Positions 1-26,590 of a stretch of 64,000 nt of DNA are shown piece after piece (position 1 is the first letter of the stretch; every line of letters begins with the position of its first letter). Source of the stretch: Klebsormidium nitens (taxonomy: Eukaryota > Plantae > Klebsormidiophyceae). The notes beneath the pieces were generated by a model. That model was not told the origin of the DNA and made no database searches. It was given only the letters and a program-made list of their open reading frames with translations. The DNA is taken from positions 193,407-257,406 of the forward strand of contig DF237009.1 in NCBI GenBank assembly GCA_000708835.1, given 5' to 3'. A program made the position numbers and the translations under genes.

Positions 1-1025
1 GGCCCCACGTTAGGAGCCGACGAGAACTCCAAACGCTCGGTCCAAATCGAGGGCGAACGCCTTCTTTATGAATCTCGTCAGGACTTGAGCTGAAGAAAGT
101 GAACACATGCGCATAGAAAGCCTTATCGAACAGACTCCCAAGTCGGCAGACCCAAGTGGCAAATGACGTGAGCGTTGAAGAGGCGAGACACGGTGATCTC
201 AAGTTATCGTGACTTCCATAGACTCACCGAGTCAATGACAAGAGCGAGCCGGCCCCCTTCGACTGCATCCTTCAACAAGGCTGCCAAGAAACAGGGACAA
301 ACAAATCAGAAAGGACCTGTTATCCTCGTTGGATGATCTTTCAAAATGACAACGCGTGCTTCAATTATGCTTCTAACATGCCATACTTTGATTGCTGGGA
401 AGCTGGAAAGCAGGTAGCAGTCTAACAGACATATATCAGGTATCTGACTAAGAAGAAAGGCTGTATCCTCATCATTCCTTCTGTACAACGAGTGTTAGCT
501 TTGTCGGCGAGGCGTGATTCGCCTGGACCTCATTTTTGGACAGCTTTCAGAAAACCCCAGTCCTTTGTTTTTCTTGCCAAACCACTTCTGTGACTTGTTC
601 AAGCACGAAGCGCTCTGAGCGGGCTCACCTTCGCCAGCGTTTTGGATACCCACTTTAAGTCCTTCTAAGGATTCGTCATTCTCAAAGTGCACCTTCGAGT
701 ACCCTCCTCGCTGGAGCTTCCCGAGAGCCGAACTCATCCGTCGTGACGCGTCTTCCTGACCGCTCGACCCCACTTCTGCTGCACGTTGGCTCTGGTTCCG
801 GGCTCGCACGGAACTGACATCGTTTGTTTCATCTTTTGGAGTTCTGCCTAGGCTGGAGTCTGGCTCGGGGGAAGTTTGCCACCCTAAGGGATCTGAGAAG
901 CAGTCTAGGACTTGCAGCGGCTCCAAGCCCTCTGTTTCAGAACCGCTGCTCTGATTGAGATGGTGTGAATACTCCTCAGGGGCTCGCTCCAGGGCCAGAA
1001 GTACAGTGCCTCTGCGGAAAGACAC
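1..1025 (-). CDS. Putative multi-exon gene of unknown function, running off the left edge
   Basis: 176-aa ORF 495-1025 of charged/Ser-rich composition; candidate downstream exons with AG/GT boundaries (RNDEDTAFLLSQIPDICLLDCYLLSSFPAIK; ALLKDAVEGGRLALVIDS|gtgagt; SSPDEIHKEGVRPRFG...). No family recognised. Confidence 0.35.
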
Positions 1026-1309
1026 AATTGCATGCTCAGCTGTACTTGCCAGAATGTTGTCAAAGTTTGAGAGCGGTGATTTCAGAGCCTGGCAAGAATA
1101 CGTAGGTCAAGGGGTTTTTGAGCGCATTCCTAAACAAAACCATGCATTGAGTTACACTCCTTAGTCACCTCTGATGCCTGAAGCAGACCCCATTGGTTTC
1201 GGGACAATAAAGCCTCCAGATAGTAAGCTTCCCAGAGCCAAAAGTTTATCTGCTCTGCACCCTGCCCCACCCTAGACCCCCAGTCTATCCCCACCCGTCC
1301 CAGGGTGGT

Positions 1310-2537
1310 TTAGCTGATCGTCCTTGCAGCTTGATGGTTATGAAGTTGACCTTTGTCAACTTCAAAGAAGCACGACTTTCTTTCGCACGCTCTTACCATG
1401 AACTAAGAGTCAATGCTAGCCACACCAGCTTTTTCACGATCATATATGACATGTTGTATCTGATCTTTTTCGGTGGCAAGGCCCTCAAGAGGTAAATCCG
1501 AAATCTTACGCAATTGAACAGATGGCTGATCTCAAATCACCTCGCAATTTGGCAGACATGTCAGTGCCATACTGTATGGTCGCACGTCCTAAGCACTGCC
1601 ATTGTTGCGGATTGAACCAGTCTATGGGACTCATCCTGCATCATGAAAGGTGCCCCTCAACCATCATAAATATGTGCCATTACAAAGTACAAAATTTAGT
1701 CCTGCTCAAGCAGTCAAGTAATCAGGTGATCCACTCTGTAGTGTGAATGGGGAAGTCTCTCACCTGGCCTGTGCCCTTTCTTTCTTCACCACACTGAGCA
1801 ACTCTTGTGAAATATGCTGGCAGACTTGAGGGCCCCCTAGAACTTCTGCAGAGTCCCTCACAATAACCACATTGAAGTAGTCGTTCTCGAGCGCCTTGTC
1901 CTTGAATGAGCGCACCACATTCTCCATTCTATTCACCGCCAGCTACTGATCGAAAGGCCACCAGAAAGATACTCACCAAGTGCTGCTCTGACCCTGGAAT
2001 TATTTCAAGATGAAGCGAGCGAGCGAGAACAACTGGCTTCCCTTCAGTAACATGGAATACCTACACGATACCTGTAGGTCTTCAGCTCCGTGTGACGCTG
2101 GCAATCGCAGCAGGAACAACAATTTCAACATTAAAAGGTTGCACCATGGGTGAATGGAAGTATGAATGAATGAATGAAGTGCCTTCTGAAGTCAGGAAGC
2201 GGGAGCAAATGGTGGTGGTGCAGTACTGGGTGCTGCCAGCCTGGTGGTGGCAAACGGGCCATGGCATTGCAGCAGAGATAATTAGCTTCATCAACGTCAT
2301 GCATGGGCGGACTGTCACTGTGCCCAGAAATATGGACGGCTGGAAACAGCCCTGTTGTCTTGTGATGTCATCCAAAGCCCTTATCGAACGGCTGAGACTG
2401 CGTTCCTGTTGTCTGAAAGTTTCAGAGCTAAATGCCACTAATAATGGAGGTGAAGTCGGTGGCCCTGGGCATGAGGTGAGCCAGCTTGCTTGGTGGAGGG
2501 AGAGCAGGTGGCTGGGGTCTGGGACGCAGCAACGCAT
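1310..2537 (-). CDS. Putative multi-exon gene of unknown function (may join the gene to its left)
   Basis: ATG at 2537; short protein-like segments bounded by AG/GT (LAVNRMENVVRSFKDKALENDYFNVVI|gtgagg; HISQELLSVVKKERAQAR|gtgag; MSPIDWFNPQQWQCLGR). Head-to-head with the gene at 2884. No family recognised. Confidence 0.4.
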
Positions 2538-2883
2538 GCTCCTGAGGTTCTTCGGTGGTGCTTGATGCTGGAGAGTAGGTGAAGTGTGCGCTTAGCTGGA
2601 TGTCTCTGGTGGGTCTGATTTCTATCAGCAAGCAGCCTTCCGGACGAGGCTGGCACGAGCGCGGGAGATACGGAACCGAAGCTTTCAAGGCGTCCTTATT
2701 TTGTCGCACGGAAGAAGCTTGCTGCTTCTCGTTGGGCTTACTCATTTACGCTTCGCGCCTTTTCAGGGCTCGCTGTGCTGCCATCTAACAGAGAAGCGGG
2801 GTTGTGTTCCAAAAGCGCCTATAAAAATCTTCAAGCGGGGCCTGGTTCATTCGATCGTAAGGCCGTAGTTGGAAAGCAAGGCC

Positions 2884-5800
2884 ATGGCGCATATGCGCCG
2901 GGCTGAGAACTCGGATACTCGCTCACAAGGCTTTGATAGGGGGAGGGGCCACCTGAATCACCATTCGGACCGACCGCGCTATTCCCCACCTTTTGAAGGG
3001 GAGCTTGGAGGGCACCTTTTTCTGACAAACCACCAGCAAATAGAAGAAAATTTTGCACGACAGATCTTTGGTGAGTCAACTGAATCATTTGCCAGAGTTT
3101 TTTTGTGGTTGTTTGTGCTCTGTGGTGACCTTATCAGTTTCGCTCAAAGTTGGCAGTATGTTCCAGGTATTGCATCTTGCAGCCAGTGGTGATTGTATCC
3201 AGTATTGCAAGTGTCCCTTGTCTTTCTTCTGGTAACGAAGTGCTGCTTTTAAGTCTATTAGAGTGCTGTGGAGCAGTTGGTAAAGGTTGGATTTGTTATT
3301 GTGCTTCTTATTGTATAGCTGATACCACACATCCCATTATGTCCGCACTCCGAGCTCATTGCATATAAGCTGTCTATTCTGGAGCAACCTCAGTCCATAG
3401 AGGAGCAATTTTGTTTGATTATGTTGGCTGCTCTGTGGAGGCTTTTGGGGAAGGTTGCTCCAGTGTTCTGCCTCTTCTTTGCAGTGACCATGGAGAATAT
3501 GCTGTGTAATTGTTGAGAGGGGTGCCTCGTGCAGCTTCCTCTGATTCCGTGCAGCCTTGCTTAGTAGTCCATTTTGGAATTTTCCATTTGTTGGCGCAAT
3601 GCCTGCCCCCCAAATCAGAATGCAATCGGTTGGATTTATCTGGTCAGTTGGCTTGCCTCGATATCCGTTTCCTGGATTTTGGATGTCTTCGTGCTGTCTG
3701 TTTCCTCTGTTTTTGGTCACCTCGCAATTGCAATGTGTTATGGCTGGAAACTCTGCCTCATGTTGGCGCATCATATATATGGAATTCGAAGCACGTTTGT
3801 TTCGATCGTATCTTTCAGACTTGACAGTTGCCTTGGTAAAATTTTGACAACTTCCCCTCTACGCGGCCTGTGGAATGCACAGTAAACAGTCAGAGACCTA
3901 TGTTTGTGTTCTGAGTCCATCTGATTGCACATTTTTATACAGAAAGTTGTCTTTTGTGCCCTGCAATATCAACTGCGCTTGTTGGTGGTATTCTACTACT
4001 GCTTCCGAAGTTGACAGTCTAGTCTTTCGGTCCGTCGGTTCTAATTGTTGTCTGGTCATGTAGTTTTAACCAAGTATCTGGCTGTCCTTTCAAAGCCTGC
4101 GGAGGCTCACAACTATATCAGGTCGGGAGTACTGTACAAGATGGGTGGTTTGGAACTGCTTCCATGATGATTGCTGAAGTCAAAGTTTTGAAGTGTGACG
4201 CTCCTTGTAGTGAGTGCTGTAACAGGACGACAGTTAACAAGTGGACGTTCTGCCTGAAAGAACCGTATCAAACATTTCATCAATCAACGGGTCAACTGAC
4301 GTCATTCTGCAATGTCCTGCAGCCACCAGCTTTTCCAGAGAACTCCCCTCAGAGGCTAATTCATTGTGCAGGTCTCCCAAAGCAACACGCGCCAACCGTG
4401 CTCCGCATCAAGGAAGGCCTCCCTCTCTTCCTCTACAATACCTCCACACGTGCTCTGCATGGTGTCTTTGAGGCGAGTGTCATTTCATTGTTTTGGTTGA
4501 CCTTTAAAAAAGGGTTGGTCATCCTCCAGATAGCTCAGATGTTCACAGATGGCTGTCTTACACAAGGTGTTGGAGCAGAAGGGAGCTTTCAACTGAGATG
4601 CTGGCAGCGGATGCAGAGAGAACACATCTTCAATCTAGCGAGCACTTAATCATCCGACGTTGCAACCTCAACGCATGTTTCTTTCTGGCAATCTCCGGTT
4701 TTGGAAAACATGTGCTTTGCTGTTTGGTAGAGGCGTGTTGTTGGCCAAGCCATATGTATCCTTTTTGAGCCTGACATTGCTGATGCTTAGGCAAAGGCAC
4801 AGCTCGCCTTTGTGCCCCTATTGTTGAACTGAGGCTGGGGTTCGAATTGACCCAAAATCTGTAGTTTTAGAGACCCAGGAAAGTACTTGAGGCCCTTAGC
4901 GGCCGTGCGCAAACATGTGGCAAGCTTTTTGGTCGCTGAATCGGTCTGGAAACAGTTCTTTTTTCTCAATGGTTACTGGATTGTGCGTATGATATCCTTA
5001 TTCCTTGGTTTTGCAGGCAGCAAGCGACGGTGGACTGAATTTAGAGCCAGACGCCTGGCAAGATCACGCTCTCTCTGCCCAGCTCAAGCAGCCCTTCTCA
5101 AAGTTCCCAGCACAGGTGAGAGCAGCTTGAGACAAGCGATTGTTTCCATGTGCATGTTCCTAAGTAGTGATTAGTGCCTCTTGTATGTTGTCTTAGCTGG
5201 GAGTGGTTGAGGCATTGTGAGGCATCAATGTGAATGGAGTTCGGGGGAATCTGAATGAAATTTGGTCAGAGGAAGTTGAAGTCAGGGTAGACATGGGGTA
5301 TTTATTGTGTTTCTTTTCTTCAGGTGCGCTTTCGCGTACGCGCTGACAGGGGAAGGCTCGCTGAGCCAAAGTTTCGGGACATCCTTGACTACCATACCAG
5401 CGACTACAACACACATTTCCGTCTCCCACTCTCCATAGAACAGGCAAGCATCCTCTGGTCAAGGTCGCAGGCATGGTGATATTGGCTGCTAATGTAATAG
5501 GGGTTCTCTTCTACAAGCAGCCTGCTCAAGTGCTCCAAAATGTTTATCGCAAGTGCTATATACAATCAGCTCGAACGACATATCCAGTTGTAGATGCCGA
5601 CTCAATGTTACTGCGGAGTCGCCACGGTTCAGCACGCTAATTGTTCTGCTGGGACCGCTCCAGGTGCTGGTCGAACCTTGCTTAGGATCTGTCACATCTG
5701 CAATGATGCAGATTGTCACCTTAGAAAGAAGCGGATAAGCAGCAGAGCAGCAAACATGGAAGATTTACGTTCGTCAAATCTCACCTGTTCCACGTAATTT

Positions 5801-8800
5801 CCATGCAGGCAAACCACCTTTTGGAGCTCTTCAACATGGCCCCCTCAGGACCCCGCCCGGCTCCGCCAACCGCAGAGCAGCCATCCGCCGCTGGTGATGT
5901 CATAGACGAAGGGGATTGGGAGCAGGTCAAGACGAAACCGCGCACCAAGCCACTGAAAGTCCAACCGGGCAACTCATATGGCCGGCAAGTAGGGTCTCCG
6001 ACAGGGCCTTCTACTCCGAGGCGGAGAGCAGAGGGGCCGAGGCCCGGACACCAGGGCCCTGTTGGGAACGGAGACGTTGGTGGTGGTAGAGGGGGCCCTG
6101 ACAGGTGGCGGCCGGATGGCGGCGACTGGGCAGCGCGAGCGGGGGGAAGGCAGCATACAGGTTCTGTCTGGGGAGCGAGAGAGGGTGCCGCAAAGGAAGG
6201 CGGTGCAAAGGAGGGGGCTTTGAAAGAGGATGCCGGTGTGGGGAGAGCTGAAGAGAGGGGCAGCAAGGCGGAGGTTCGTGAGAACGGCATCCTGGAAACA
6301 GGGCCTGCGAAGCTCAGTCCGAGGAAGCCTGGAGCGCAGGCGGCGAAGGAGGCCCCGTTTTCGAGCCCGCGAGAGGCGGGGATTTTGGGCAGCGGCAGTG
6401 CAGCAGTAGAGCAGGCAGAGGGGAAGGGACAGGTTGCGGAGAGCGTGACCACGGTTGCTGATCCCCCTGCGAAACCGGGAAAAGCGGCAGTTAAGAGCAG
6501 CACGTTTTCTTATAGTGCAGCTCTCAAGGTGGGACTCCCAGCCAAAATGGAGGACATTAGCGCGAGCGAGAAAGGCAGGGGAGGGGCATCGGACACAGCG
6601 GGAAAAGCAGGGGGGGCGGAGAACGAGAGTGGCGAGGTGTTCCCGGTGCTTAGCAAGAGTAACTCAAAGAACGAGAGGGTTGCGAAGGCGCCAAAGAAGG
6701 AGCACGTTGCCGTCGTCGTGAAGAACGAGGATGGGGAGACAAAGGATGCTGACAGGAAGGACACCGAGAAGAAGGACGATGAGAAAGAGGATGCCGTGAA
6801 AAAGGATGGCGTTGAGAAAAGCGGTAAGAAAGGAGATGGGGAGAAGAAAGCGGAGGCGTCGAAAGTGGGGGATGATATGAGCGAAAAGAAGGACGGGAAG
6901 AAAGTCGAGGCAAAGAAAGACGCGGAGAAAGCTGCGGGGGACAGGAAAGAGGCGCCGAAGAGCAAGGGCGATCCGTTGCAAGCGCCAAAGAGCCCAAAGA
7001 GCAAAAGCGAAGCGGGCGAGGCGTTGGTTGGGGCGCAGAAAGCGGAGCCATCGCCGCCGGCTAAGCCCGAGCCCGTCAAAGCTCCTGAAAAGCCGAAGCC
7101 GAACCCCTGGGGTAAGCTGCCGACGCCGATCGAGCCGGTGTCTCTCGCGGAAGTGCAGCAAAAGGAACAGGAGCAGCAAGCGGAGCTGTCACACGCCGCC
7201 CGAAGGGAGCCTCAGGCGAAGCCCGCGATAGGAGACAGAGAGGGTGCTGTAGACAGGACGAAAGAAGCTGTTGCTTTGCACGAGGGGGGTGAGCGGAGAG
7301 AGGCGGCCAAGCCAGTGGGGCGGGGGTGGGAAGCTAAGAAGCCCGAACTCCAGCAACCGGTGGTGCAGGTGCAAGCGCCCCAAAAGGGAGGGGGTGCGTT
7401 CGCTCCGCCGCTGCGGCAGAAGACACCCCCCCGGATGCAGCATCCGCAGCCCCTTGCCGCAAGACGGGGGGAGCCGGCGCCTGTAACGGACCTGTCGGCG
7501 CTGCCCCCCTCTGCGCCGGAACGGATCCAGCAGCGCAGTATGGGAAACTTGGTGGGGGGCATCCCCGCCAGGAATCGGACCCCCCCCCTCAGTCACCATA
7601 GCCACCGGCCGCAGCCAGTGCAGGTCCCGGCCCCCCAGAGCCTCGGCACGGGGGTGCGAATAAGCCCCACCGCAACCCCGTACACCCCCAACTCAGCCGG
7701 GTTTACCCCATCCGCGACCCCGTTCACACCGTCGGGCCGGCTCTCCCCGGGCCTCCGAGGATACGGCCCCCCGATGGGGGTGCTCCAAACGCCCCCCCCG
7801 ATGTTTGCGGCCGACCCTAGCCTGGCGTACGACCAGAGCTGGCGCATGCCTCGGGGGCGCAACGCGCCCCCCCCCTCGTGCAAACGGGGGGGTCGCGCCG
7901 CCCATGGTCTACAGCCCCACGACTCCCCCTGACTACGGGTATGCGCTCGCGGCGCTGTCTCCGTCCTCGCAGCCAGGGACGCCGCTGGGGCCCCCGGCGA
8001 TGGCGACGCTCGTGGGCGGGGGGTTGCTGCCGCCCCCCCCGCCGGAACTGCTGGCGAACGCAGACGCGCTGCACTGGGAGGTGCTGCGGTACGCGGAAAA
8101 GGCGCGACGGACGCCCGAGGCGCGCGCGCGTGCGGAGAGCGCGGTGCTGTGCGTGCGGCGGGCGATCCAGGCGCTGTGGCCGGCGGCAGATGTCGAGGTA
8201 GGGGCAGAGTTTTGTTGCAAGGCGCGTCCAGGATGATAGGTTCCTGGGTTCGGAACATAGGGGTTCAAGAACTAACACACTCTGGATTTGGGTCTTAGGG
8301 GTTCAATGTTTGGCCCGGAGTTACGGTTCGAGGCGACTCCGCCCGTGGCTTGAGTTGATCAGCTTCAAAGTTGTTTGTTTTTCATCCTGAGGCCGTATCC
8401 TCGCAATGGCACAGCTTCTATCCGCAAATGTTTGGCTCCTCGTCCACTGGCCTCTGCCTCCCTCACAGCAATTTGACTGCTTGGCCGTGTTGTTGCCTTT
8501 CACCAACTAGTCTGCCGGCTGAAGCTCAGGCTGCTTTTCATCAGCTTCGAGATAGTCGTTTAGTTCCTGATGGTTGTTCTACCGCACCGTCAAGATTTCC
8601 TCTTCGCGAAGGTTTCGGTTCCTTGTCACCACATTTTTGTGGTACATCTCCTCCTCACATGTCGGCCCCTTCTCTCCACAGATTTTCGGCTCCTTCTCCA
8701 CCGGCCTCTGCCTTCCCCACAGCGACGTCGACCTGGCAGTCGTCGGCGCCCCTCCCCCTCCCATAGAGCTCGCCAACGTTCCCGGGGGCCGCCCGCTGGT

Positions 8801-11800
8801 GCCGCTCATTAGAGAGCTGGCCGCGGTGCTTCGAACCAGCCCCTGGCTCGACACCCTCACGACCATCGAAACCGCGTCCATGCCCGTGATCAAGCTCCGA
8901 TGCAAGCCCGGGTGGGAAAACGATTCCGCTCCGGGGGGTTCGGAAGAGAGCGGATCGACGGGGGGTACCGAGACGGACGCATCGAAGGGGGGTGCGGAGG
9001 AGAGCCAATCTCAGGGGGATGCGGAGAAGAGCCAATCGACAGGGAGTCCGGAGGAAGGCGAATCGGTCTCGGGGGCTGCGAAGGAGAACGAGGAAGCGCC
9101 GGGGAAAGAGAGCGACGCTGAAGAGCGTCAGAGCGAAGCTTCGGGGGGGGAAAGGAGCCCCAGCCAGGCGCCCCCCGTTGCGATTGATATCACGATCATG
9201 GGCAGGAGGGGTCAGCCGATGGGGACGGACGGGAAGGAGGGGCCGCCGCCAAAGAGCCAGCACAACGGCGCGTCGGCGCGCCAGTTTGTGATTGAGCGGT
9301 TGCAGAGGCTGCCGGCGCTTGCCCCACTCGTGAGTATTCGAGAGCGCTAGTTCCAGCTCTGGCTTGTGTGGTTTAGATTGTTTTACCGTCACATTCTCTC
9401 TGAGATGCAACCTTAGCAGAGCGCCACATATTCCTCGGTCATCTTTGCGGTCAGTTTCAGATCTTCTGCTGTTGGTCGCGGAAGAGATCCACAGAGCAGC
9501 CTCAGAAGCAGCGGAAATCATCGGAGGCAGCAATCTGCCCACGTTCTCTCGATAAAGTCCTCAACAGAGCTCAAGGAATGCCTTGCAGAACGAGACTGGT
9601 GCTCTGTCTTACAGACGGGTTAGCTCGGAGGTTTCGATTCGTGGCAGTTCTCTTTCGTGATATTTCCTCCTCTTTGACTTCACTGTCGCCCCAGGTTTCA
9701 CATGCTCTTTGCTTCGGGCGAGTGGATACTGGTTTTGGACCTTTTATCCAATCAATGAGAGAGAATGCGCGTGCCCTTTGCTGGTAGCTTGTGTTGTGGC
9801 TCGCGCGATGAATTGGCTGACCCGGGGACTTTTCAGACCACAATTTTCTCTTTTAGTCTGCTCTTCTCTCTTTGGGTCAGCCATGCCGCATAGCAGCATA
9901 AGTCAGCGTTCAGTCGTGCATTCATGTCGCAAAGATGGCGAAGATATACGGCCTCTCTTCTGCAGGTGTTGCTGCTCAAGTCCTACCTCCACCACCGAGG
10001 CCTCAACGACGTTTACACGGGCGGTCTCGGCTCCTTCTCCCTCACATTAATGCTAGTGTTCTACTTAGAGGTGGGCTCCTAACTTGCACCAGCAATGCTG
10101 CGCTTTTGGGGCTTTCAAAAACTCCCATCTTTCTTGGCGATGTACACCCAATTGGGGGCAAAATGTGTCCTCCTGACCTTTCAAGTTGCGCAGAACGTGC
10201 AAGATTTCTCCGCTCTGTGTTCGTTGCTAAACAACTTTTTACAGGGTGGCTTCTTCGCTCTGAAGCTTGGTCAGTGTGGCAACTTGATAGCAATGCTTAG
10301 ATGGTTTGACATTCGGAAGCAAAAAATGGTGATTGAATGTTCCAAAAAATGGCCTCAACAAGATGACCTTCCGACATGGTACTTTTGCAGCCCTTCCGAT
10401 CCTCGTCACAGCACGTGCTCATTGGAGACAGGACAATGTTTGCTGTTGTGAAGTGAGAATGGCTTGGGTAATTATCGCCGTCTTTTGTTGGTGCATAGGT
10501 TCTGCAACTCAAGAAACTCTAAATTTTCTCCCCGAAGTCATGTTTTGTTCAGAGTATTTCCGTTCAAAAAAGCAGTGCAACGCTCTGGTCCCCCCTTTCA
10601 GCTCCTAAGAATAATCAGTCTGCGATTACGCCGTGTTCGTCTGACGTTCCTGTTTTTCCATCTGCAGCGAGTAGCCTTCATACCCATGGAGGCTCCCCCG
10701 GTTCCGGTTGCGTCCACGAGCGGTAACGATGCTTCGGCCGGCGTTAATGCTTCTGCCCCAGCAGCAACTAGAGCGGCCGCCGAAATCCCGGGCAAAGAAT
10801 CCAGTGATCCAACGACTGCGCCCGAAACGAGTTCAATCAGCGAGGAGACAGACCAAAAGAGCGTAGGTACTGCAGACGAAGACCCCAGCAATGCGGCGAA
10901 AACAACTAGCGTGAGCGGAAACGACGAGGAGCCAGAGAGTATACGGGGGACAACGAGAGCGGGGGGAAAAGTCGTGGGGATGACGGAGCCCGCGGACTGG
11001 CTCACGTCGGGGCCGATGCCGAACCTGGGGGCGCTGCTGATCGGGTTTTTGCACCTGTTTGGGAACGAATTAGATCTAGCGACCGTGCGTTTAGTGCTGA
11101 AGGTAAGTGCTGCTTTGTCTGTGCCGTCAGAACGCTGATTAGAAGGGGCTCATCTGGAAACATTTTGAAAGGGCGTTGGAGATCCGGCGGCAATCTGGAA
11201 GCTGACGAACCACGTTTGCAGTTTACGCTCGCAGTTTTGTCGTAGGGACCACCCGTGAATCATGACCCAGCCTCTATGCAAACCTGGAACGTAACCCCGA
11301 ATCTGAGATGCTGTTGCTTCTGATAGTTGTTCACAAATGCATGATTTCGGCTGTTGCGTCAGTGAGCTTCTCTGAATTACCTCTGCGGGGACGAGCTTGA
11401 TGCGGAGATTGAGCTCACAAGTGGGTTCTGAGGACGGCTCAGAAATGTGGTTTTGACGAGAGAAACAGGATCCAGAATACCTTGATTGCATATGCTGATA
11501 GCTAGTAGTCGGCTTTCCGACGAAGTAAGGTTGCGCGTTGACTGAAAACCTACTTGGCCTCCAGTGTTGCCTTTCAGTACCGGCAGGTAGGAGGTACGGT
11601 ACCTTTCAGGCCATAGTACCCTTCTGGTATGTACCTTGGTTTACCACGTGGATCGAACAAGCCATCCGATTGGCTGCAAAATCTGGAAAGCTTTTTGCAG
11701 CTTTTCGGTCGACGGCACCCTAAATTCTTCAACAACCAAAAGGCAGACTGCTGAGCGTTTCGGCTGCGTGTTGCAGAGTAACGGCCAGAACGGGGGCATC

Positions 11801-12557
11801 TTCTACCACGACAAGCTGACGCGGCCGGTGGCGCTGTGGATCGACGACCCGCTGCGGCCGGGGGCCAATATCGGGGCGGGCTCGTTCGCTATGTACAACG
11901 TGCAAGTGAGTCTACGGTTTGCTGTTTGACTTTTTCGTATCGCGTTCTGCCGTCACTTTTCTCGTGTCTTCGTTGGGTACCTGGTGTCCCGTATCTATCT
12001 CGTGGGATCCGCAGAGGGTTTGGCGGTTTCCTGTCACCTCATGTCCCCTCACTTGCATCGCTTTCTGTCGTTACGTCTCTTTCGTGTTTATTTGATAATT
12101 AGTCTCCCGTAGCCATGTTGTGGGATCCGCAGAGGGTTTGGCGGTCTTAGGGTGCTCTTGTTTGGGCACTTGTTCTCGTTTGCATTTTCCTCAGGCAGAT
12201 TTTAACAGTGATTTCGCTCTAGGTTGCAGTCGCTTTGCTCTCGGCACCTAAGATCGTTGGCCCTTTTTTCGAAGCATCCGTCTTTTTTCGGACTCCAGCA
12301 CGTCATTGAAAGCGTCCGCTGCCTCAGAAAGCCTCTCTATCATCTGTGCTTTGCAAATTCTCTGCACTTTTTGGGCGACGCAGCAAACAGCAGCGCTGAC
12401 ACGTGCCGCCCCTCTGTTGGCCCAGGCCGCCCTTCGAGAGATGCTGAAATTCCTGTCGACTCCCCGGGTGGCGCCTCCGCGGTTTACGGACGAGTCGTCT
12501 CTGATAGAGCAGCTATTCAGCCAGGTATACCCGGAGCGAGTTTTGAGCCGGACGTAG
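2884..12557 (+). CDS. DCD domain / disordered linker / TRF4-TENT4-like non-canonical poly(A) polymerase fusion protein
   Basis: Exons 2884-3070, 4372-4472, 5017-5115, 5324-5443, 5809-8197 (with a +1 frame change near 7867-7875), 8682-9329, 9966-10070, 10668-11102, 11777-11905, 12426-12557; all junction phases compatible. DCD motifs GGHLFLTN..EENFARQIFGLP, GLPLFLYN..LHGVFEAAS.GG, W..FPAQVRF, LLELF. Nucleotidyltransferase motifs IFGSFSTGLCLPHSDVDL, VAIDIT, LLKSYLHHRGLNDVYTGGLGSFSL, LWIDDPLRPGANIGAGSF. Confidence 0.85.
8418..8492 (+). pseudogene. Degenerate intronic copy of the start of the catalytic exon (pseudo-exon)
   Basis: Reads MFGSSSTGLCLPHSNL versus IFGSFSTGLCLPHSDV of exon 8682; acceptor CAG changed to CAA; catalytic DxD lost. 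Confidence 0.85.
12002..12145 (+). repeat. 26-bp exact direct repeat in an intron
   Basis: gtgggatccgcagagggtttggcggt at 12002-12027 and 12120-12145. Confidence 0.85.
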
Positions 12558-15500
12558 TTTGCGGAGGCATTCGAATCGTACATCTCTTAATGTACAGTAG
12601 AGGGAAAACTTTGCAAGCCCCCCTATTGTCGATGCTTGTGCAGCGAGTGGAAACGCACTGAAATGCAGAGTCCAGGTCGAAGCCTCTTTTGTCTTCCTTG
12701 ATCCTCTCCAAAGCAGATTTGAGCCTCTGCTAGGAAAGAGCCGCAGATTGCCCTACTGATCAGACGGGTTCAGTAGTAGTGAGGTCGTTTACGACGGGAC
12801 CATGGGGACCATGCCATGGCTACTAAAGACAGGTTGCTGAATTGCATGGCTCTATTGGCAGCCTGACCCGAACCACCTGCGTTGCGGGAAGCTACATTGA
12901 CACGAACTGATCTTAGGAGTGATAAATATGACGCCATGTGGAGCACTTATCGGAACGGATCGTAGATAGGGGTGGGTATTTAGAGATAGTTGGGCCCTGT
13001 GTTAGCTGTCCTATCACGCACTCCTAGGAGGTCAAGGAATTTTGGAACACTGCCTCTGCTTCGCCCTCGGAAAGCCATGAAGAAGGTGCTTAAGATTCAA
13101 GCATTTGAGTCCTGTGTATAGTGTACTTCTGGCTATGAGCTGGTTGGGTTAGCGCAGAGTTGGGATCTGGCTTTTTGTTGCATATGATGTTAGTCCATTG
13201 AACCGATCGTCGACGTTCATGTTACAAGTACGTCTGGTCGTATATATTGCAGTCATTTAGAAATCGGAATAATACATGCACGTGAGCTGATATCGCTGCA
13301 AGACTGCGCATGACACGCCAATGTACATGCACATGTGTCACGCAAAATTATAAGCTCTGTCACTACATTTTGTTTCGCGAGCTTCCTAGTGGCTAGCGTG
13401 CATTTTGATAAAGATTGAATATCTAGCTATACGCGCTGGAGTTGGACCACGATATAATTTGATTGGATTGATCTCAGCTTCACTGGACGTAAGCTAGCTT
13501 TGCGCTAGTGGCGTTTATGTAGCCAAGCTCAACTTCGCACAGAGCTGCAAGCAGGGCGGCTAGCTGGCAGTCGTGCGGCTCATGCCTACAAGTGTAAGAT
13601 GATTTCTCCAACTTCTTTCTTGAGTTGAGCATCTAGAGCTTTGGGATGGATATTTCACCAAACTCGGTTTGAAGGTTGGATCTGATAAAGCTGCCAATGA
13701 AGGATGAACAAATGAATTAGTTGCTTGTACCATGCAGCTGCCTTCATGAAAGCAACACGCTTCCTCATATGAACGCGACCTCTGGACCTTTGGCACTGCT
13801 TGCACAATGACGCTTAGTTTCAGAGTAGAAGGTCCAAGTAGACTTCCCGTTCTATGATTCCAAGTCTTGACATCATTTCACGTGGTGGAATGGTGCTTGC
13901 TGAGACTTGATAAAGTGAGCGAGCGCTATGTCGAGATGAGGCATGCGCGAATGGCGCCCGAGCTCCGTGTGAGTCGCCTCAAAATGCAACGTAAAGCCTC
14001 CATTCCAACTTCAAGCAATCCATTACCTTAAGGACTCTGACTTACTCTGAGAAGACAAGAAAGCCTGAATGCTGAATGACATGGGAGAATCGTGGAGCTG
14101 TATTTGCAGAAGGCGTTCGACGCGGAGTGATCCCCGGAGGACCCTGAAGAAATTGGATTCCTGTGTGAGAGCATCCGTCGATGCAGAGAAATCGACGCTG
14201 CTGAGGATTCGCCTGTCAGCGCAGAGTGGCACACAGATGCCGTTGGATACGACGCGCTCCATAGTCTTTGGATCGGACGGTCAAAGATGGATTTGGCGAT
14301 CAACCGTCGTCTGATTGGCTGCCGCTCGCCGGAACAAAACTGGGTACGGCCGGGCCAAGCATGTTGTTGAGAGTACCGTCACGTGCGTACAGTTGTACCT
14401 TACCTATACCGTAGTGCAGGCATGCAGAAAATCGGAGCTCAGTCTCCAGATTGATGACTCACTAAGTAGTTGGAGCTGAGCTGCTCCACAGAGCCACCTG
14501 AGGCAGCGCGGCAGCTCCAGCAAACAAACGTTAATTAAGCTGGCTAGTCACACCAGTTTACTAAACGAGCTCAATGAAGACGGGTGGGGTTAAGGGCCGT
14601 GAGCACGGATGCGGGAGCAGGCAAAGATATTTGGGTTTAAGTGTTGCTTTAGTCTTCTTTTGAGTTGGTTCAATCATAATAATCACGAAATCAGCCAAAA
14701 TCTCGACACGCCTCATTGCCGCAGCCTGAGTGCTTCAGTGCAGTCATTGAGCCAACTAATTGAAGCCTGCAGCTCATAGCTGGCCACTGGTTTTAGATAA
14801 CACTTGATCCAGTTGAAGCTGACCTTCCTAAACGTGGCTGTTTGCGGGCCTGGGCCGCTGTCACGGATGAGGAAACGTAGGACTGATGACGTCATTGGGA
14901 TGTCAGGGCTTTCTCCTGGCACCCCTCAGCTAGCACTCCCGTCTTCTCTTCTGCATGAGCAGCCGTTAGCTTCGGAACTTTATATTACAACATCGGCAGT
15001 GTCTGAGGGCAAGACTCAATCCGGCCGCTGTTCAATCTGTGTTGACACCGAAACTGGTGACCAAAGGAAGAAACAGCTGGTCTGCTAATGGCGCCCGATT
15101 TGATGGAGGGGGCAGCCCGCCAAAGAGCCAAGGGCGAGCTTTCTGCAATTTGCGGATCCAAATGAGCTTACCCGTGAACATAAGGTTATGCTGAGTTGCG
15201 AACAAAACGCTATGCTGAGCTACATCATTAGGAAGGTTCCAAAATGACCCCAGGTGAGCTCCGCTAGCTGACGAGATTGCCATACGGAGCTCGTCTGCTA
15301 CACTCGCTCGAGCGTGTCACACCTTTCTGCTTTCATGAGTCAGATTCTTCCATGCATTTGACACTAGGTGCGAACTGCGAGTTGCAAGTTGAGGTGCCAC
15401 CTTCAAGTGCATAAATTTACAGAACGGGCAGTCCCTTGGGAAGATTCAAAGGCTGACGTCGCGATCGTGCTGCTCCATGTGCGAACCCCCCTGTTCTGCA

Positions 15501-15813
15501 CATGCAGATGAACAACCCCTGCTAAGCTTGCACCCCCAGAGGGTTTCAGGTGGAACGGCCACCAAAGCAGCGGACCTGCGCACGGCAGCTTGCCCGCACA
15601 CCATCAGCCCAAGTCTACTTAGGGGCTTTTGACAGGTTGACAATAGATAAGTAGCACCGACCCATCCCGCGTCCGGCAGCTCGTGGGCCAAAACAATCTC
15701 TGCTGCCCTTAAGGACTCTGGTTAGGGGCTTAGCAACAGACTGACCGTACTTAGACGACGCGCAAATCAGATACGGAAGCTGCTTCCCCCAAAGGCTAAT
15801 CTTCTAGCACAAG

Positions 15814-18800
15814 ATGTGTGAGAAGGCAGCTGGCAAAGCTCATCGGGGCGGGGACGGATCCAGGTCGCGGCACCCCCCCAAGTCGGAACCAGATGTCCCT
15901 TCCCTCACCAAAATGTCCCCAGCGCTTTGGCGGGCCCTCAGCCGAGGTTTCGGCGACCGCACCGGGACAGTCCCCCTAGTCTTGGCGCTTTTGGTCGCCC
16001 TCAGCCTTTTCTCGTCGTGCTTCTCGGAAGTCCAAATCGAGGGGGCCTACTCGGATTACATGCAACGGGTGCTCTCGTCGATAGTCACCCCTCCAAAAGT
16101 GTATCCGGGGTTGATTAAACGGCACGGGGTGAAGTTTCCGCGGGTGTCGCATGCGCACGGGGACGGGGATTTGGCTGAGGATGACAAGGGAGGGTTCAGT
16201 AGAGAAGCAACGGTTTTCGGGGAAGAACGTGGGGTCTCCGGATCAGCAGTTCGGGAGCTTTCGGAGGCAGTACGCGAGAAGATAGGGATCGTCCAAACAG
16301 TGTTCAATCCTGCGCAGGGGGCCTTCCTTGTGACGGCAAATAACTCAAGTCTGGTAGAGGAAGTCGGCAGTTCCGGCCAGCTGGTCAGCGTTGGTAACCT
16401 AGTGCTTAACCTCACTAACCCGAGCCTGATCAACCTCACTAATCCGATCATACTCGATCCCCTCGTCCTGCCTAACCCAGTGAACTCGAGCCTGGCTAAA
16501 CACGAGGGTTTGAGCTTAGTTACGCTGAACCTAAGCTCAGGTCTCAACGTCAGTCGAGTCACGCCGCCCCCGGTCGTTCTCACGTCGACCGGGGGCAAGT
16601 CGAGCTCAAAGGGTATGATGCCGACGCCCAAGTTTTGGCCGGCCGCGTTTTACAAGCCCGGGAGCGCCGCTTATGATAAGCGCTGCGACCTCGGGGACGG
16701 GGAGTGGGTTCTCGGGCCGAAACGGATGAACATCTCCAACTGTCCGTTTGCGTCGCAAACGAAGGAACGGTGCGCGTGGCGCTTTGCGCGGGAGCCCAAC
16801 TACCGGGACTTCCGGTGGCAGCCGCGCGGCTGCGCGCTGCCGGAGTTTGACGCCAGGTGAGAGCGGCTGACTGAGGGGCGGTTGCGAATTCCAGATGGTG
16901 TCAAGTATGTGGAGCTCTCCCAAGAAGAAAGGGGCCGAGCTTCGATGCCTTAATATAACAGAGACATTTTGGGTGAAGCAGTCACTCTAGGAATATTGTG
17001 TGAAGGTGCGCATATTTGACACGTAGTAATTGTATGCAAATTGTGGATAAGAGCCAATGGAAGGCGACTGAACGACTTCTGTAGCAACAGGAAAAAGAGA
17101 AATGTGGTCACCCAGGCACCAAGCGAAGCACGCTTATGGAGGAGCCCTTTCAGACCTCCCGAAATTTCAAGCCTTCATCTTTCAACAACCAGCGCTTGAA
17201 CAATCAAGCTTTCAGGTTTCGGGAAGATCTGAGAATCACTGTTCATCGTCCTGGAGCTTCTTCAAACCAATCGGACATCTCCGTAAGGTCTCCGCACAGG
17301 ACCTTCTTACTACTCTGGCCCAACAGGACGATTCTCGCAAAGCCAACTCCATCAAAGACTTGCATTGATACGTGTCAATTCTTTCAATGCTGCACCAACA
17401 GGACAACATTTGCAGCGCTCCTTGTAATCTCAAGCTCCCTCTAAACATCCAGTCTTTCCGCGCAGCTCCTTCTTACACCGGTGGGCCAACAAGACGATCC
17501 TCGTCGCGGGGGACTCGCTCGGCCGCAACTTCTACGGCTCCTTCATGTGCCACCTGTCGCACGGGGGATCCCTCAACTTGGACGCGAACGCGAGCGCGGC
17601 CGCGGGGTTCCAGATCTTCCGGAACGAGGAGCACAACATCACGATCGGGCGGGCGATGTCCGAGTTTCTGGTGATGAAAGAAACCAGTCAAGAGGCGTTC
17701 TCGCGCCTTAATCAGGTATGGCGTTAACCATTGTTGGTTAGCCCTGTAAGGCCTCTTCGTAACCTCTACTAATAGGGTTTGGGCAGCCTGATAGTCGCGA
17801 ATCAGGCGTTGAGCTCAGGCGTTGAGCGCATTAGCTAGCAGTTCACTTTCCTGGTGAACAAGAGATTTGTTTTCCAACTTGACTAAGCGCGTCAATTATC
17901 GTCGTGTAAACCAACCAGGGTTACTGAGCATGCCGTCAACCATGTTTGTAGGCCGTCGGGTGAAGCAATGTTTCCGGAATCCGCTCGCCAAACCTGCTCT
18001 CATTGTGACCGAAATATCTCCCGGCACTTCTCTTGGGGCCGCAGTTGCGGATCTGTCGAGGCTTATCACTCTTTCCGTGCAGACCGCCAAACGGTAACCG
18101 GCCTTTTCTAACGTCGGTCGTTCAAAGCTCTTGAACATCAGGAAAAGCTCAGAGTTCTGCGGCAGCCTTCGGAAAGCCGAATAGAGTCCTTTCTCAAGGT
18201 CTCAGGACACGTCGCGCCCTTTTCAAACCATCGGGCCAAGCCCTTCCTCTCTCATCTTCGTTCTCATGCCCGCTTCGTTCCGAGCGTCGAGATACGCGCA
18301 TTAGCAGATTGCCACAAAAAAATCTTTTGCATTCTCACCATCAATTCGGCGTCCGATGTCATTCTGACTGTCGCTCTCGCGCGCTCGCAGACGATTGAAA
18401 AGTATCGGTTCGTTCCCAGCTCGAAGAACCGTTTCCGCATTCTCAAAGCTTCGCTTCGATCTGAACCCCGCTCTCCCCGCGCTCGCAGACCGCCGGGAAG
18501 AACGGGTTCATCCTCCAGATCGACCGGGCCGACCCGCTGTGGGCCATACTAATCCAANNNNNNNNNNNNNNNNNNNNNNNNNNNNNNNNNNNNNNNNNNN
18601 NNNNNNNNNNNNNNNNNNNNNNNNNNNNNNNNNNNNNNNNNNNNNNNNNNNNNNNNNNNNNNNNNNNNNNNNNNNNNNNNNNNNNNNNNNNNNNNNNNNN
18701 NNNNNNNNNNNNNNNNNNNNNNNNNNNNNNNNNNNNNNNNNNNNNNNNNNNNNNNNNNNNNNNNNNNNNNNNNNNNNNNNNNNNNNNNNNNNNNNNNNNN

Positions 18801-20965
18801 NNNNNNNNNNTTCTCCAGATCGACCGGGCCGACCCGCTGTGGGCCCGACTGCTGCCCCGCGCGGACCTACTGATTCTCAACTCGGGCCACTGGTGGATGG
18901 GCGGCGGCAAGGAGAAGCTCTTCGTGCTGGACGGGGAATACCGCCCCGATCTCAGCTGGAGCCGCGCCTTCCGCATGTAAGATGCTTCCCCAGAATAGTT
19001 ATACAGCTTCTCCCGATCAACCTGCCAGTTTTAGTGTCATCTAATTAAGACTAATTTCACTCAACATCAGATCGACTAAGTTAGTCTAAAATATTCACTA
19101 AAACTGGCAGGTTGCTCGGAAGAAGTGTAACAAGCTCAATTCAAAGTGAGAACGAAGCTAACACTACCCCTACAGTCACCCGCTCCGCACCCGTGCCCAC
19201 CCTAACCCCCAGACTAACCCCACCCGTCCCAGTACTATAAGTTGAGCTTACTATACCCTTTTTTGGAATATGACGATACAAGCCTCATGTGCTCGGTTAA
19301 GGAATGGGGTAGGCAAGTCGTATCGATTTCAGGTTAACATGCAGCCAGTTCGAGATAGATCAGTTGCCGGGGGACGGGTAGGGTTACTTTTGGGGTTAGG
19401 GCGGAGCAGATGAGATTGCATCTAGGGTTTTGATTCAGTGCGGCCTCCCGCTTTTGCTTGTGTATCTCGACCTGGCTCAGCGCAACCTGAACGATCGAGA
19501 CTTACGAGTAGGAACCTGTATCTGAGACTATACCCATGCTTTGTGCTTAGTGGAACGGTGAACTGGATCAAAGCTGCGTTCAGGTTGAGGTCGAGCCACA
19601 TTTAGCAAGGTAGACGGTTTGTGAACCCTCCTTCGACTTCTCCACTTACTTTTCACTGCATGAAAATGATCCGACGGACTCCGGATCCTTCTGTTTCATT
19701 CTTCTCTTTCTGCTCTTTCCGCAACACCGAAAACCCGTCGAGAATGAGCCATATCTAGCAAGAAAGCATTATCTGAACCCCTCCTTTGATCTTCTACACT
19801 TTTTCTACAATGGAACTCAAGGGAATCGGTTCCTTCCGTTTGAAACTTCTCTTTCCGTTTGTCCGTAGCGGAATGAAGCATGTCCGGAAAGCTGTGGAGA
19901 GGTCCGGCTTCAACGGCACCGCCATCTTCCGGACGTTTTCTCCTTCGCACTACCAAAAGGGCGGCTGGAACTCCGGCGGAACGTGCGACGCAACGGAACC
20001 GAACCCGCAGCTCCAACTCGATCCGTACGTCCGAAAGTGAGGCCCCGCTTTCGGACGGCTCCTGAGACCCGCGCTTGCGGACGCTCTCTTCGAGTCAACC
20101 CGCTGTTCTGCCCTGCCGCGCTGAGGTTTAGATCGGACAGTCCTTGATCAAGCTTCCCTCTTGGCTTTCTCAAAAGGTCGGAAGCGAGAACCTCCGACAA
20201 CTAATCGCGGTTTCCAGGCTGCTTTCTAGTAAGTATTCTGGCCCAAAAGTTCGTCTACTCAAGATAAGCGACTTCCGATGCCAGACACCTCGCGAAAGTT
20301 GCGTGCGCAGCTTCATAACGGACGTTGTTACAACCCCGCTTTGCAGCCGCGCAGTAGCTCCAACTCGTGTGGGCATTGGAGATACTGCGCGAGCAGTGTC
20401 GGTCTTCGCGACATGTGTCGCACAAAGCATCTCGTTTGAGCAATCTTTACAGGCTTGGGCCTCTCCTACAAAGATTCCTTCACGCGGTATCCTGACAGTA
20501 TCTTGAGCTTTTGCGCTTTTGGCCTTCGCTTGAGATTGGCAGGAGAAGGTTGCCCCTTGAAACCATCGCCCATTCTGGAAGTGACCTGCGGACATCTTAC
20601 TCCGGACCCCAATCATTAGGAACGAAACAGGACGCCTCAATCGGGCTTCTATCCCTCGGAAATTCACAGTGTGTCACGTGCAGCTTCTGACCATATGATT
20701 CTCACTCCAGGCAATCAGAAAACTGAAAGACACACCTCCTTTTGCCCCCAGTTTCCTCGACTTGACGCGCATGGTCTTTGCCAACTCGACGTTCCAAGTG
20801 ATGGAGATCAGCCGGCTCAGCGCCTACCGCAGAGACGGCCACGTGGGCCCCATCGCGGGCGCGAGCGCGACACGTGGCGTCCAGGCGGACTGCACCCACT
20901 GGTGCGCGGAGGGTGTGACGGACGCATGGGTGGACATTCTGCAAGCCATGCTGCGGACGGAATGA
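15814..20965 (+). CDS. TBL: Trichome birefringence-like (TBL / PC-esterase) polysaccharide O-acetyltransferase
   Basis: N-terminal TM segment (VPLVLALLVALSLFSSCF), CDL.DGEW...CPF...FRWQPRGC.LP.FD, GDS motif (ILVAGDSLGRN), NSGHWW, FRTFSPSHY..GGWNSGGTC, DCTHWC..GV.D.W. Exons about 15814-16856, 17466-17715, ~18489-18976 (spans gap), 19869-~20023, 20752-20965. Confidence 0.92.
18558..18810. other. Assembly gap (N run) inside a TBL exon; both flanks carry the same 33-bp sequence
   Basis: 253 N; ctccagatcgaccgggccgacccgctgtgggcc occurs on both sides. Confidence 0.97.
18998..19131. repeat. Long inverted repeat (hairpin) in TBL intron
   Basis: cttctcccgatcaacctgccagttttagtg (19007-19036) pairs with cactaaaactggcaggttgctcggaagaag (19096-19125); pairing extends to about 55 bp per arm with a ~25-nt loop. 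Confidence 0.85.
19158..19430. repeat. Foldback element of a dispersed G/C-rich telomere-like repeat family
   Basis: Left arm cctaacccccagactaaccccacccgtccc is an imperfect reverse complement of right arm gggacgggtagggttactttttggggttaggg; related copies at 1261-1303, 29221-29270 and 41091-41170. Confidence 0.7.
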
Positions 20966-26100: not shown

Positions 26101-26590
26101 ATGTTGCCAAAAAAACTACTCTATTTTCTCAGGAAACTTCACCTTGAACAAAACTCATGAATCAAGCTTGCAAAGAGCCTCACCAATCGACGCAAAGAAA
26201 CAACTTTCATTCACCAACCAATGCGCTGCCTGTGATTACTTAATATCCAGGTTCAGCAGAAGTAAGGGAACCTATTTTGTTGGCAGACCACACAGCGCCT
26301 GACTAGGAGAAGTCTCTGTTCAGGAGTTAGCTGCAACTTCTCTGATAACCTTGCACAGATAAAGTTGAAGCTGAGAAATGAGACAATGGACCCAAATGAA
26401 ACTCACCAAAAAGTCTTCGCCTCAGGTCATCCTCCATGGTGTCATTGTTGCAGACAAAGATGTAACCCCCCAAAGGCTCATTCCTAGGGAGGGATTCAGC
26501 AGGGGGAAGGCTCTTGAACCTTCTATCCTGGTTATTGGGCCCCATGCTTTGGAGCTGATGAAGGGGAATGCCATTGAAAACCCCTGTCAT
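23197..26590 (-). CDS. NRP: DCD domain protein, NRP/B2-type
   Basis: Exons 26590-26407, 25469-25369, 24979-24896, 24215-24105, 23685-23197. DRRFKSLPPAESLPRNEPLGGYIFVCNNDTMEDDLRRRLFGLPQRYRDSVRAIQPGLPLFLYNYTTHQLHGVYEATSFGGSNLDPNAWEDKKTKGESRFPAQVRIKVRKQCSPLDEDHFRPILHHYDGPKFRLQLSVQETLNLLDLF closely matches the land-plant NRP DCD domain as recalled. The true N-terminus may extend further upstream. Confidence 0.92.

Follow-up and report, generated by a model that had tools for sequence, protein, structure and literature searches.

Does Klebsormidium nitens make a single protein in which a DCD domain is joined to an RNA-tailing nucleotidyltransferase, or do two adjacent genes encode the two parts separately? 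The question is raised by a locus at positions 2884-12557 of the window, by which we mean the whole 64,000-nucleotide stretch of DNA analyzed here. Over its first 17,932 bases the window is identical to DF237009.1 of K. nitens NIES-2285 (GCA_000708835.1), and the record coordinates place it as the terminal 64 kb of that scaffold. A sequence-only reading had assigned both domains to one protein. Our analysis indicates that the locus is probably the K. nitens member of a conserved streptophyte family of DCD-Trf4-like fusions and that the split found in its exon 5 is likely an assembly error. The gene is ancestrally one, because the open reading frame (ORF) of relatives is continuous, 45 orthologous proteins are fused, and the 67-nucleotide gap between the two public gene models is conserved as coding sequence; the split itself is either an error of the 454/Newbler assembly or a recent fission at the strain level. 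Judged from its sequences, this DCD-Trf4 family is an uncharacterized one that extends from streptophyte algae to conifers and was not found in flowering plants.

Exon Structure of the Locus

Exon ends were read from the sequence and then fixed by aligning the exons one by one to 26 family members. For homology searches the predicted exons were used singly, and whole-protein work relied on database proteins, namely orthologues and the public K. nitens protein P0127. The start codon at 2884 and the stop codon at 12555-12557, which the sequence-only reading had already given as the outer limits, delimit ten exons on the + strand, and all nine splice junctions agree with the family alignment.

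2884..12557, +: whole locus, read as one ancestral gene of ten exons for DCD domain, disordered linker, and Trf4-like nucleotidyltransferase (parts in this order in 45 orthologous proteins)
2884..3070, +: exon 1, start codon and first DCD strand LGGHLFLTN, GT donor (family alignment, P0127)
4372..4472, +: exon 2, DCD, GLPLFLYN...HGVFE, GC donor at 4473 (Pfam DCD, 40.4 bits on its ORF)
5017..5115, +: exon 3, DCD, AASDGGLNLEPDAW...FPAQ (family alignment, P0127)
5324..5443, +: exon 4, DCD, VRFRV...FRLPLSIEQ, GC donor at 5444 (intron at the equivalent position in the related contig L004)
5809..8197, +: exon 5 (2389 nucleotides), last DCD helix ANHLLELFN, then the low-complexity linker and the enzyme's N-terminal helices (exon-like composition)
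8682..9329, +: exon 6, catalytic palm, with GS at 8685-8708, DxD at 8718-8735, and the third Asp at 9177-9194 (Pfam PF22600, PF01909)
9966..10070, +: exon 7, central-domain helix with GGLGSFSL (aligns to Trf4)
10668..11102, +: exon 8, 115-residue low-complexity insert, then PNLGALLIGFLHLFGNELD, the start of the poly(A) polymerase (PAP)-associated region from 11013 (family alignment)
11777..11905, +: exon 9, LWIDDPLRPGANIGAGSF, nucleotide-recognition-like motif (aligned to Trf4)
12426..12557, +: exon 10, AALREMLKFL... through the stop codon (homologues run ...HVQ/AAMREML...; frame conserved with the related contig L001)

The junction between exons 2 and 3, VFE/AASDGG, agrees with both the family and P0127. 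An alternative last exon starting at 12299 (HVIESVRCL...) was dropped in favor of the one at 12426, which carries on the family sequence ...VQ/AA.REML. The ten exons sum to 4345 nucleotides, a length of the form 3n+1.

A Conserved Family of Fused Proteins

The joining of DCD and nucleotidyltransferase in one protein was confirmed at the level of the family. A HMMER search with exon 6 over 1.8 billion representatives gave only 67 protein matches, among which most of the long proteins carry an N-terminal DCD domain by tblastn to the DCD exons; a full Pfam DCD domain precedes the enzyme in six of the eight matches tested. When the enzyme part of a Sphagnum protein was used instead, 54 matches were returned, and 45 of these carry PF10539 and PF22600 in one chain, with PF01909 also present in 43. 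The 45 fused proteins come from 15 genera: the algae Closterium and Spirogloea, together with Sphagnum, Physcomitrium, Ceratodon, Marchantia, Riccia, Calypogeia, Selaginella, Diphasiastrum, Psilotum, Adiantum, Ceratopteris, Cryptomeria, and Taxus. For Psilotum, ORFs of single Trinity transcripts hold both the DCD domain and the enzyme. Several matches carry what are probably gene-model faults: a Tf2-1 SH3/integrase retrotransposon fragment precedes the DCD domain in a Diphasiastrum protein (P0003, KAJ7184006.1), a second Diphasiastrum protein (P0008) has a weak, partial DCD match, and the model of a Mesotaenium protein (P0025) has no DCD domain.

Every part of the K. nitens locus is orthologous to its counterpart in the family, including the DCD subtype, the linker motifs, the intron position, and the enzyme. 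The last DCD helix shares an exon with the linker, and L004, a bryophyte-like genomic contig, has an intron at the same position before this helix. In L004 one ORF of 730 residues runs from just past the DCD domain to ...WPDADVEV, and the linker and enzyme N-terminus likewise fall within one ORF in both L004 and a second related genomic contig, L002. Close relatives of the gene were also found in environmental or unassigned contigs, L001 (JGI 3300060285) and L002/L003 (SRR14092359/58), which presumably derive from other Klebsormidiophyceae. Their exons share 80-86% nucleotide identity with the locus, at a synonymous divergence (dS) of ~0.6-1.0. L002 (Logan SRR14092359), with ~80% nucleotide identity and a continuous ORF, is the closest relative sampled.

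The low-complexity linker between the DCD domain and the nucleotidyltransferase had been put at ~700 residues; it is ~740 residues long, and its character is evident from composition, since 62% of 671 residues are A, P, G, K, E, or S. Three motifs within it are shared with other lineages, NPWGK and the two below. The pattern G[DEQ]WE.V[KR].[KR], to which the first listed motif conforms, directly follows the DCD domain in 15 of 36 family members.

5911..5937, +: linker motif GDWEQVKTK (common to zygnematophytes, bryophytes, and a lycophyte)
6505..6528, +: linker motif FSYSAALK (common to bryophytes and a lycophyte)

None of the family searches returned an angiosperm protein with the fused architecture or from the enzyme clade. 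When the DCD part was used as the query, family members ranked first and the angiosperm matches were B2-type DCD proteins without the enzyme. Because no angiosperm member was found even though two gymnosperm genera have the gene, these results suggest that the fusion was lost at the base of the flowering plants.

Plant DCD proteins have been sorted into four architectures, none with an enzymatic domain (Tenhaken et al. 2005, PMC1182354). Among them, B2, NRP/N-rich, and DCD-Kelch proteins share with the new family the same Pfam domain and its conserved core (LGG..IF, GLPLFLYN, FPAQV, FRL.LS), but they are enzyme-free, whereas the K. nitens family joins the domain to a nucleotidyltransferase. 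The sequence-only reading had stated that no characterized plant tailing enzyme bears a DCD domain, and our literature search, which had most subscription journals outside it, likewise turned up no description of one. Whether the architecture was already known in land plants has a divided answer: it is present, unremarked, in land-plant proteomes, as in Physcomitrium (UniProt A0A7I4CRB1, 'DCD domain-containing protein'), but no paper describing it was found.

A Trf4-like Nucleotidyltransferase

The C-terminal part had been described as an intact nucleotidyltransferase of TRF4/TENT4 type, and both halves of that description hold. Its motifs were located at 8685-8735 (FGSFSTGLCLPHSDVDL), 9177-9194 (VAIDIT), 10020-10043 (GGLGSFSL), and 11840-11875 (IDDPLRPGANIG). 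Exon 6 alone passes the Pfam cut-offs for PF22600 (MTPAP-like_central, 33 bits) and PF01909 (NTP_transf_2, 25.2 bits), and the catalytic residues are invariant in the aligned family members, with G-S present in 36 of 36, D-x-D in 36 of 36, and the third Asp in 35 of 35. L001 and L002 share all 35 residues of exon 7, at a nucleotide identity of 79%. For the PAP-associated domain named in the sequence-only reading, the evidence is mixed: the quoted motifs are present and the region aligns to the Trf4 central domain, but the scores against PF03828 are 19.2 and 20.3 bits, below the cut-off of 22.6. Two low-complexity inserts, acidic and rich in Ser/Thr, lie within the module, one of 87 residues in the palm (8913-9173, acidic and Ser-rich) and one of 115 residues in the central domain (10668-11012); an orthologue, P0086, has low-confidence loops at these places (596-616 and 682-734).

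By sequence, the nearest solved structure is that of yeast Trf4 (3nyb), which is matched at E = 2e-27 when a single protein is the query and at 1e-36 when the family profile is, and the profile E-values of other branches are far weaker (Cid1 2e-11, GLD-2 7e-7, TUT7 1e-5, URT1 0.02). In the AlphaFold model of the Selaginella orthologue, the DCD domain and the enzyme are predicted with confidence and the linker is disordered, and a Foldseek search with this model again gave 3nyb as the best match (template modeling (TM) score 0.70), with only enzyme matches listed. These comparisons place the enzyme closest to Trf4, above the Cid1/TUT, GLD-2, and URT1 branches. The alignment to Trf4/Pap2, the core of TRAMP, spans the palm, the central domain, and the DDPxxxxNIxxGSF motif. 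In contrast to Trf4, the new family adds the N-terminal DCD domain, a disordered linker of 400-900 residues, and the long inserts in the catalytic module, and it forms a small clade of its own that is confined, among the matches, to streptophytes other than angiosperms. Neither human TENT4A/B nor Arabidopsis TRL, both relatives of Trf4, was returned as a match.

Cid1, TUT4/7, and URT1 have the same Pol-beta-type fold, but Cid1, TUT7, and URT1 are much more distant by profile, and the new family has no conserved histidine in its motif. The sequence-only reading had drawn attention to the lack of a Cid1/TUT-type His, and the family alignment agrees: the motif reads DDPLRPGxNIGAGSF, with V, A, S, or M at x, and none of its positions has a conserved histidine among 36 members. 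Titles of PDB entries name His336 as the UTP determinant of Cid1, for which the DDPLRPGxNIGAGSF motif is the presumed counterpart in the family.

The DCD Domain and Its Possible Role

3007..5832, +: DCD domain, exons 1-5, P0127 residues 42-177 (Pfam PF10539)

A complete but divergent DCD domain had been proposed for the N-terminal part, and this proved correct. P0127 matches PF10539 over profile positions 1-126 of 126 (116.7 bits, E = 7e-34), and the domain has 48% identity to that of the Selaginella family member, versus 57-72% among other members. Across 46 sequences, the polar and aromatic residues of the DCD domain show almost no variation. A PDB search at the sequence level with the DCD part gave no match even at E = 10, and a homologue search with the ORF holding DCD exon 2 (7 candidates) also gave none. 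The fold search was performed with P0127, in which the DCD domain is the sole folded domain: in its AlphaFold model, the predicted local distance difference test (pLDDT) score is mostly >90 over residues 41-150, with disorder elsewhere. Foldseek with this model returned PH1033, MJECL36, many YTH domains, and the EVE protein 2eve at a probability of 1.00, TM scores of 0.55-0.72, and E-values from 8e-6 to 1e-3; the YTH matches include YTHDF2 bound to N6-methyladenosine (m6A), Pho92, MRB1, Mmi1, AtCPSF30, and YTHDC1. The model therefore supports the earlier claim of kinship with EVE and YTH domains, in line with the link between DCD and EVE obtained by HHpred (Bell, Wolf and Koonin 2020, PMC7641849), and the DCD domain of P0127 is modeled as a PUA-like beta-barrel of the YTH/EVE fold type. 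Although the DCD model superposes on the YTH and EVE readers (YTHDF2, Pho92, YTHDC1, AtCPSF30-YTH, PSPTO5229, PH1033), sequence identity with them is 12-18% only.

We propose that the product would consist of three parts: an N-terminal DCD domain, a disordered linker of 400-900 residues, and a C-terminal Trf4/TENT4-like noncanonical poly(A) polymerase made up of palm and central domain. The enzyme would add untemplated tails, most likely A-rich, to the 3′ ends of RNA, and motifs in the linker would probably recruit partners. Yeast Trf4 needs the zinc-knuckle partner Air1/2 for RNA binding. In the new family, the DCD domain may take the place of a separate partner of this kind and find substrates for its own enzyme. 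Tailing of RNA 3′ ends with the DCD domain as a built-in targeting domain is the most likely activity of the protein. A partial precedent is found in plant CPSF30-YTH and in heterokont CPSF30 with a YTH-DCD-KH arrangement, where readers are carried on 3′-end factors (PMC7641849). Both these fusions and the DCD-enzyme family join a PUA-like reader domain to a protein of the RNA 3′-end machinery, but CPSF30 is a cleavage and polyadenylation factor rather than a polymerase, whereas the new family would have the reader-like domain on the tailing enzyme itself.

Does the DCD domain read a modified base? The modeled fold makes a coupling between the domain and a modified base plausible. A stronger version, in which the DCD domain recognizes a modified base such as m6A, 5-methylcytosine (m5C), or another and licenses Trf4-type tailing of those transcripts only, is offered tentatively, and we consider it possible rather than probable. 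If true, tailing would mark chosen transcripts for decay or stabilization, the pathway would be at least as old as the ancestor shared by Klebsormidium and land plants, with a loss in angiosperms, and the plant DCD domain would gain its first biochemical role. The competing view accepts the fusion and treats the DCD domain as a general RNA-binding, protein-interaction, or regulatory domain, with tailing uncoupled from any RNA mark; this, too, strikes us as rather unlikely. Mmi1 recognizes a sequence motif, not m6A, and its YTH domain, solved with RNA, is among the structural neighbors of the DCD model; most of the fold neighbors, on the other hand, are m6A-bound YTH domains and EVE proteins. 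The low identity to YTH domains is in keeping with a nonreader, and the near invariance of polar and aromatic residues argues the other way. Protein-protein interaction was the role proposed for the domain by Tenhaken et al. (PMC1182354), and Bell et al. call the ligand of the plant DCD domain unknown, but the same study finds prokaryotic DCD domains in modification-dependent restriction contexts (PMC7641849).

One Gene or Two

The sequence-only reading had described one phase-consistent exon chain, and this is the claim that failed: exon 5 contains a single +1 frame change. The frame of the DCD domain and linker ends at a stop codon at 7930-7932, and the N-terminal helices of the enzyme are in the +1 frame, which is open only from 7664. 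The existence of two public models follows from this change, because the reading frame of the DCD domain terminates at 7932.

2884..7932, +: public gene model 1, KFL_000600310 = P0127, 876 residues, DCD only (locus L006 10001-15049)
7933..7999, +: 67-nucleotide 'intergenic' gap between the public models, coding in the second frame (conservation with L001 and L002)
8000..12557, +: public gene model 2, 548 residues, MTPAP-like_central and NTP_transf_2 (converted from L006 15117-19674)

Translating exons 1-4 and 5809-7929 separately reproduces P0127, and model 2 begins at an internal ATG at 8000 (MATLVGGG). Alignment to L002 locates the change, as one L002 ORF matches the first frame up to ~7845 and the second from ~7871, which places the shift between ~7846 and ~7870. 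Runs of G5, C9, and G7 occur at 7853-7892, in this interval and its flank. The genome was assembled with Newbler from Roche 454 and Illumina GAIIx reads (PMC4052687), and the single change in exon 5 is most likely a one-base draft error near these runs. Two other explanations were tried and rejected. A frame-restoring intron is ruled out by the uniformly exon-like sequence of 5801-8200 and by the L002 homology, which leaves no more than ~25 nucleotides between the frames; programmed frameshifting is unsupported, as relatives have a single frame. Exon 5 is exon-like in composition throughout, with a G+C fraction of 0.51-0.78 and T at or below 0.16, versus T of 0.24-0.36 in the flanking introns.

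The gap between the models reads ...DYGYALAALSPSSQPGTPLG... in the second frame. Over 7922-7999, amino-acid identity with L001 and L002 is 92% and nucleotide identity only 82%, and this is therefore coding sequence rather than spacer; the ~80 nucleotides that precede the gap are also conserved as protein in the second frame. The ratio of nonsynonymous to synonymous substitution (dN/dS) versus L001 and L002 is ~0.04-0.15 for exons of the enzyme and reaches ~0.28 where the linker ends. Because the ratio is low on either side of the frame change, both halves evolved as coding sequence, and purifying selection acts on both sides. An uninterrupted frame through DCD domain, linker, and enzyme is absent from the window sequence and is found in L002, L004, and the 45 orthologues.

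A number of observations weigh against a single gene with the proposed function. As assembled, the sequence does not encode the fusion, and the frame change sits before or at the start of the homopolymer runs, not clearly within one. An exact look-up of the 709-residue ORF for independent assemblies with the same frame gave no record, and two metagenome pattern scans around the junction gave no match. Public annotation, with complementary DNA data at its disposal, calls two genes. The sequence-only reading had named separate messages for the DCD part and the enzyme as the result that would speak against it, and exactly those two models are in the annotation, but the models are predictions and so do not settle whether there is one gene or two. 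As for function, the PAP-associated region scores under its Pfam cut-off, long low-complexity inserts interrupt the catalytic module, the predicted activity and nucleotide preference are drawn from homology, and the ligand of the plant DCD domain is stated as unknown (PMC7641849).

A true fission in K. nitens would give two proteins, one of 876 residues with DCD domain and linker and one of 548 residues translated from the ATG at 8000, which might cooperate in trans. The assembled sequence and the public models agree with two genes, the 548-residue protein would keep the whole catalytic module with its N-terminal helix from ~8045, and the homopolymer covers only part of the interval that holds the frame change. 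We nevertheless regard fission as unlikely. Just 67 nucleotides separate the two models, and their composition is like neither a promoter nor an intron; protein-level conservation in the second frame covers the gap and the stretch that precedes it; and both the closest sampled relative and all 45 orthologues have the parts joined. Were the two parts on one message, the second ORF would fare badly, as a second ORF on an mRNA is poorly translated in eukaryotes. A decaying pseudogene is very improbable: the frame change, the degraded partial copy of exon 6 within intron 5, and the divergent DCD domain speak for it, but 4.3 kb of coding sequence is disrupted exactly once, with nine splice junctions that fit the family, catalytic residues that are all intact, and strong purifying selection versus relatives. 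An assembly error in an intact fusion gene is the reading that we carry forward.

What the Family Offers

The binding partner of the plant DCD domain has been an open question since 2005, and a 2020 study explicitly called it unclear if DNA or RNA is the target of DCD proteins in plants (PMC7641849). That a fusion of the domain to a tailing enzyme has persisted for hundreds of millions of years is strong evidence by association for DCD acting on RNA, and the family provides a concrete protein for DCD study in tractable mosses and liverworts. For the RNA-tailing field, it adds a Trf4-type enzyme with a built-in candidate domain for substrate recognition. The apparent absence of the family from angiosperms would explain why work in Arabidopsis and rice never met it. 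In terms of annotation, two adjacent K. nitens models are to be seen as halves of one ancestral gene.

Neighboring Genes and Minor Observations

A second DCD gene, of the canonical B2/NRP type, occupies 24102-26590 on the minus strand with at least four exons (LGGYIFVCNNDTM..., FGGSNLDPNAWEDKK, FPAQV, HHYDGPKFRLQLS). It is a better match to the DCD domains of the fusion family than is the divergent domain at 2884-5832, and no nucleotidyltransferase adjoins it. Upstream of the fusion locus and divergent from it, an Elongator Iki1/ELP5-like gene extends to ~1928 on the minus strand. Downstream, a trichome-birefringence-like (TBL) gene (PMR5N/PC-esterase) starts at 15814 on the + strand, and a run of N (an assembly gap) at 18558-18810 lies inside or adjoins it. 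At 41333-46900 on the minus strand is a MutL/PMS1-like mismatch-repair gene, one exon of which is long, acidic, and of low complexity.

Within the fusion locus, antisense ORFs of 189-295 residues in 5781-9542 have no Pfam match and were set aside as by-products of GC-rich sequence, and an Rfam scan of window positions 1-16000 gave no match. Two GC-AG introns (donors at 4473 and 5444) occur in this one gene, and P0127 uses both; L004 has a GT donor where the locus has the second GC donor. The decayed partial duplicate of the exon 6 start in intron 5 lies at 8430-8510 on the + strand (MFGSSSTGLCLPHSN...) and has lost the acceptor and the DxD codons; protein P0026 matches 8362-8475 in a tblastn-type comparison. 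In the last intron, at 11939-12145, a unit of 89 nucleotides is present in two copies, 118 nucleotides apart and 76% identical.

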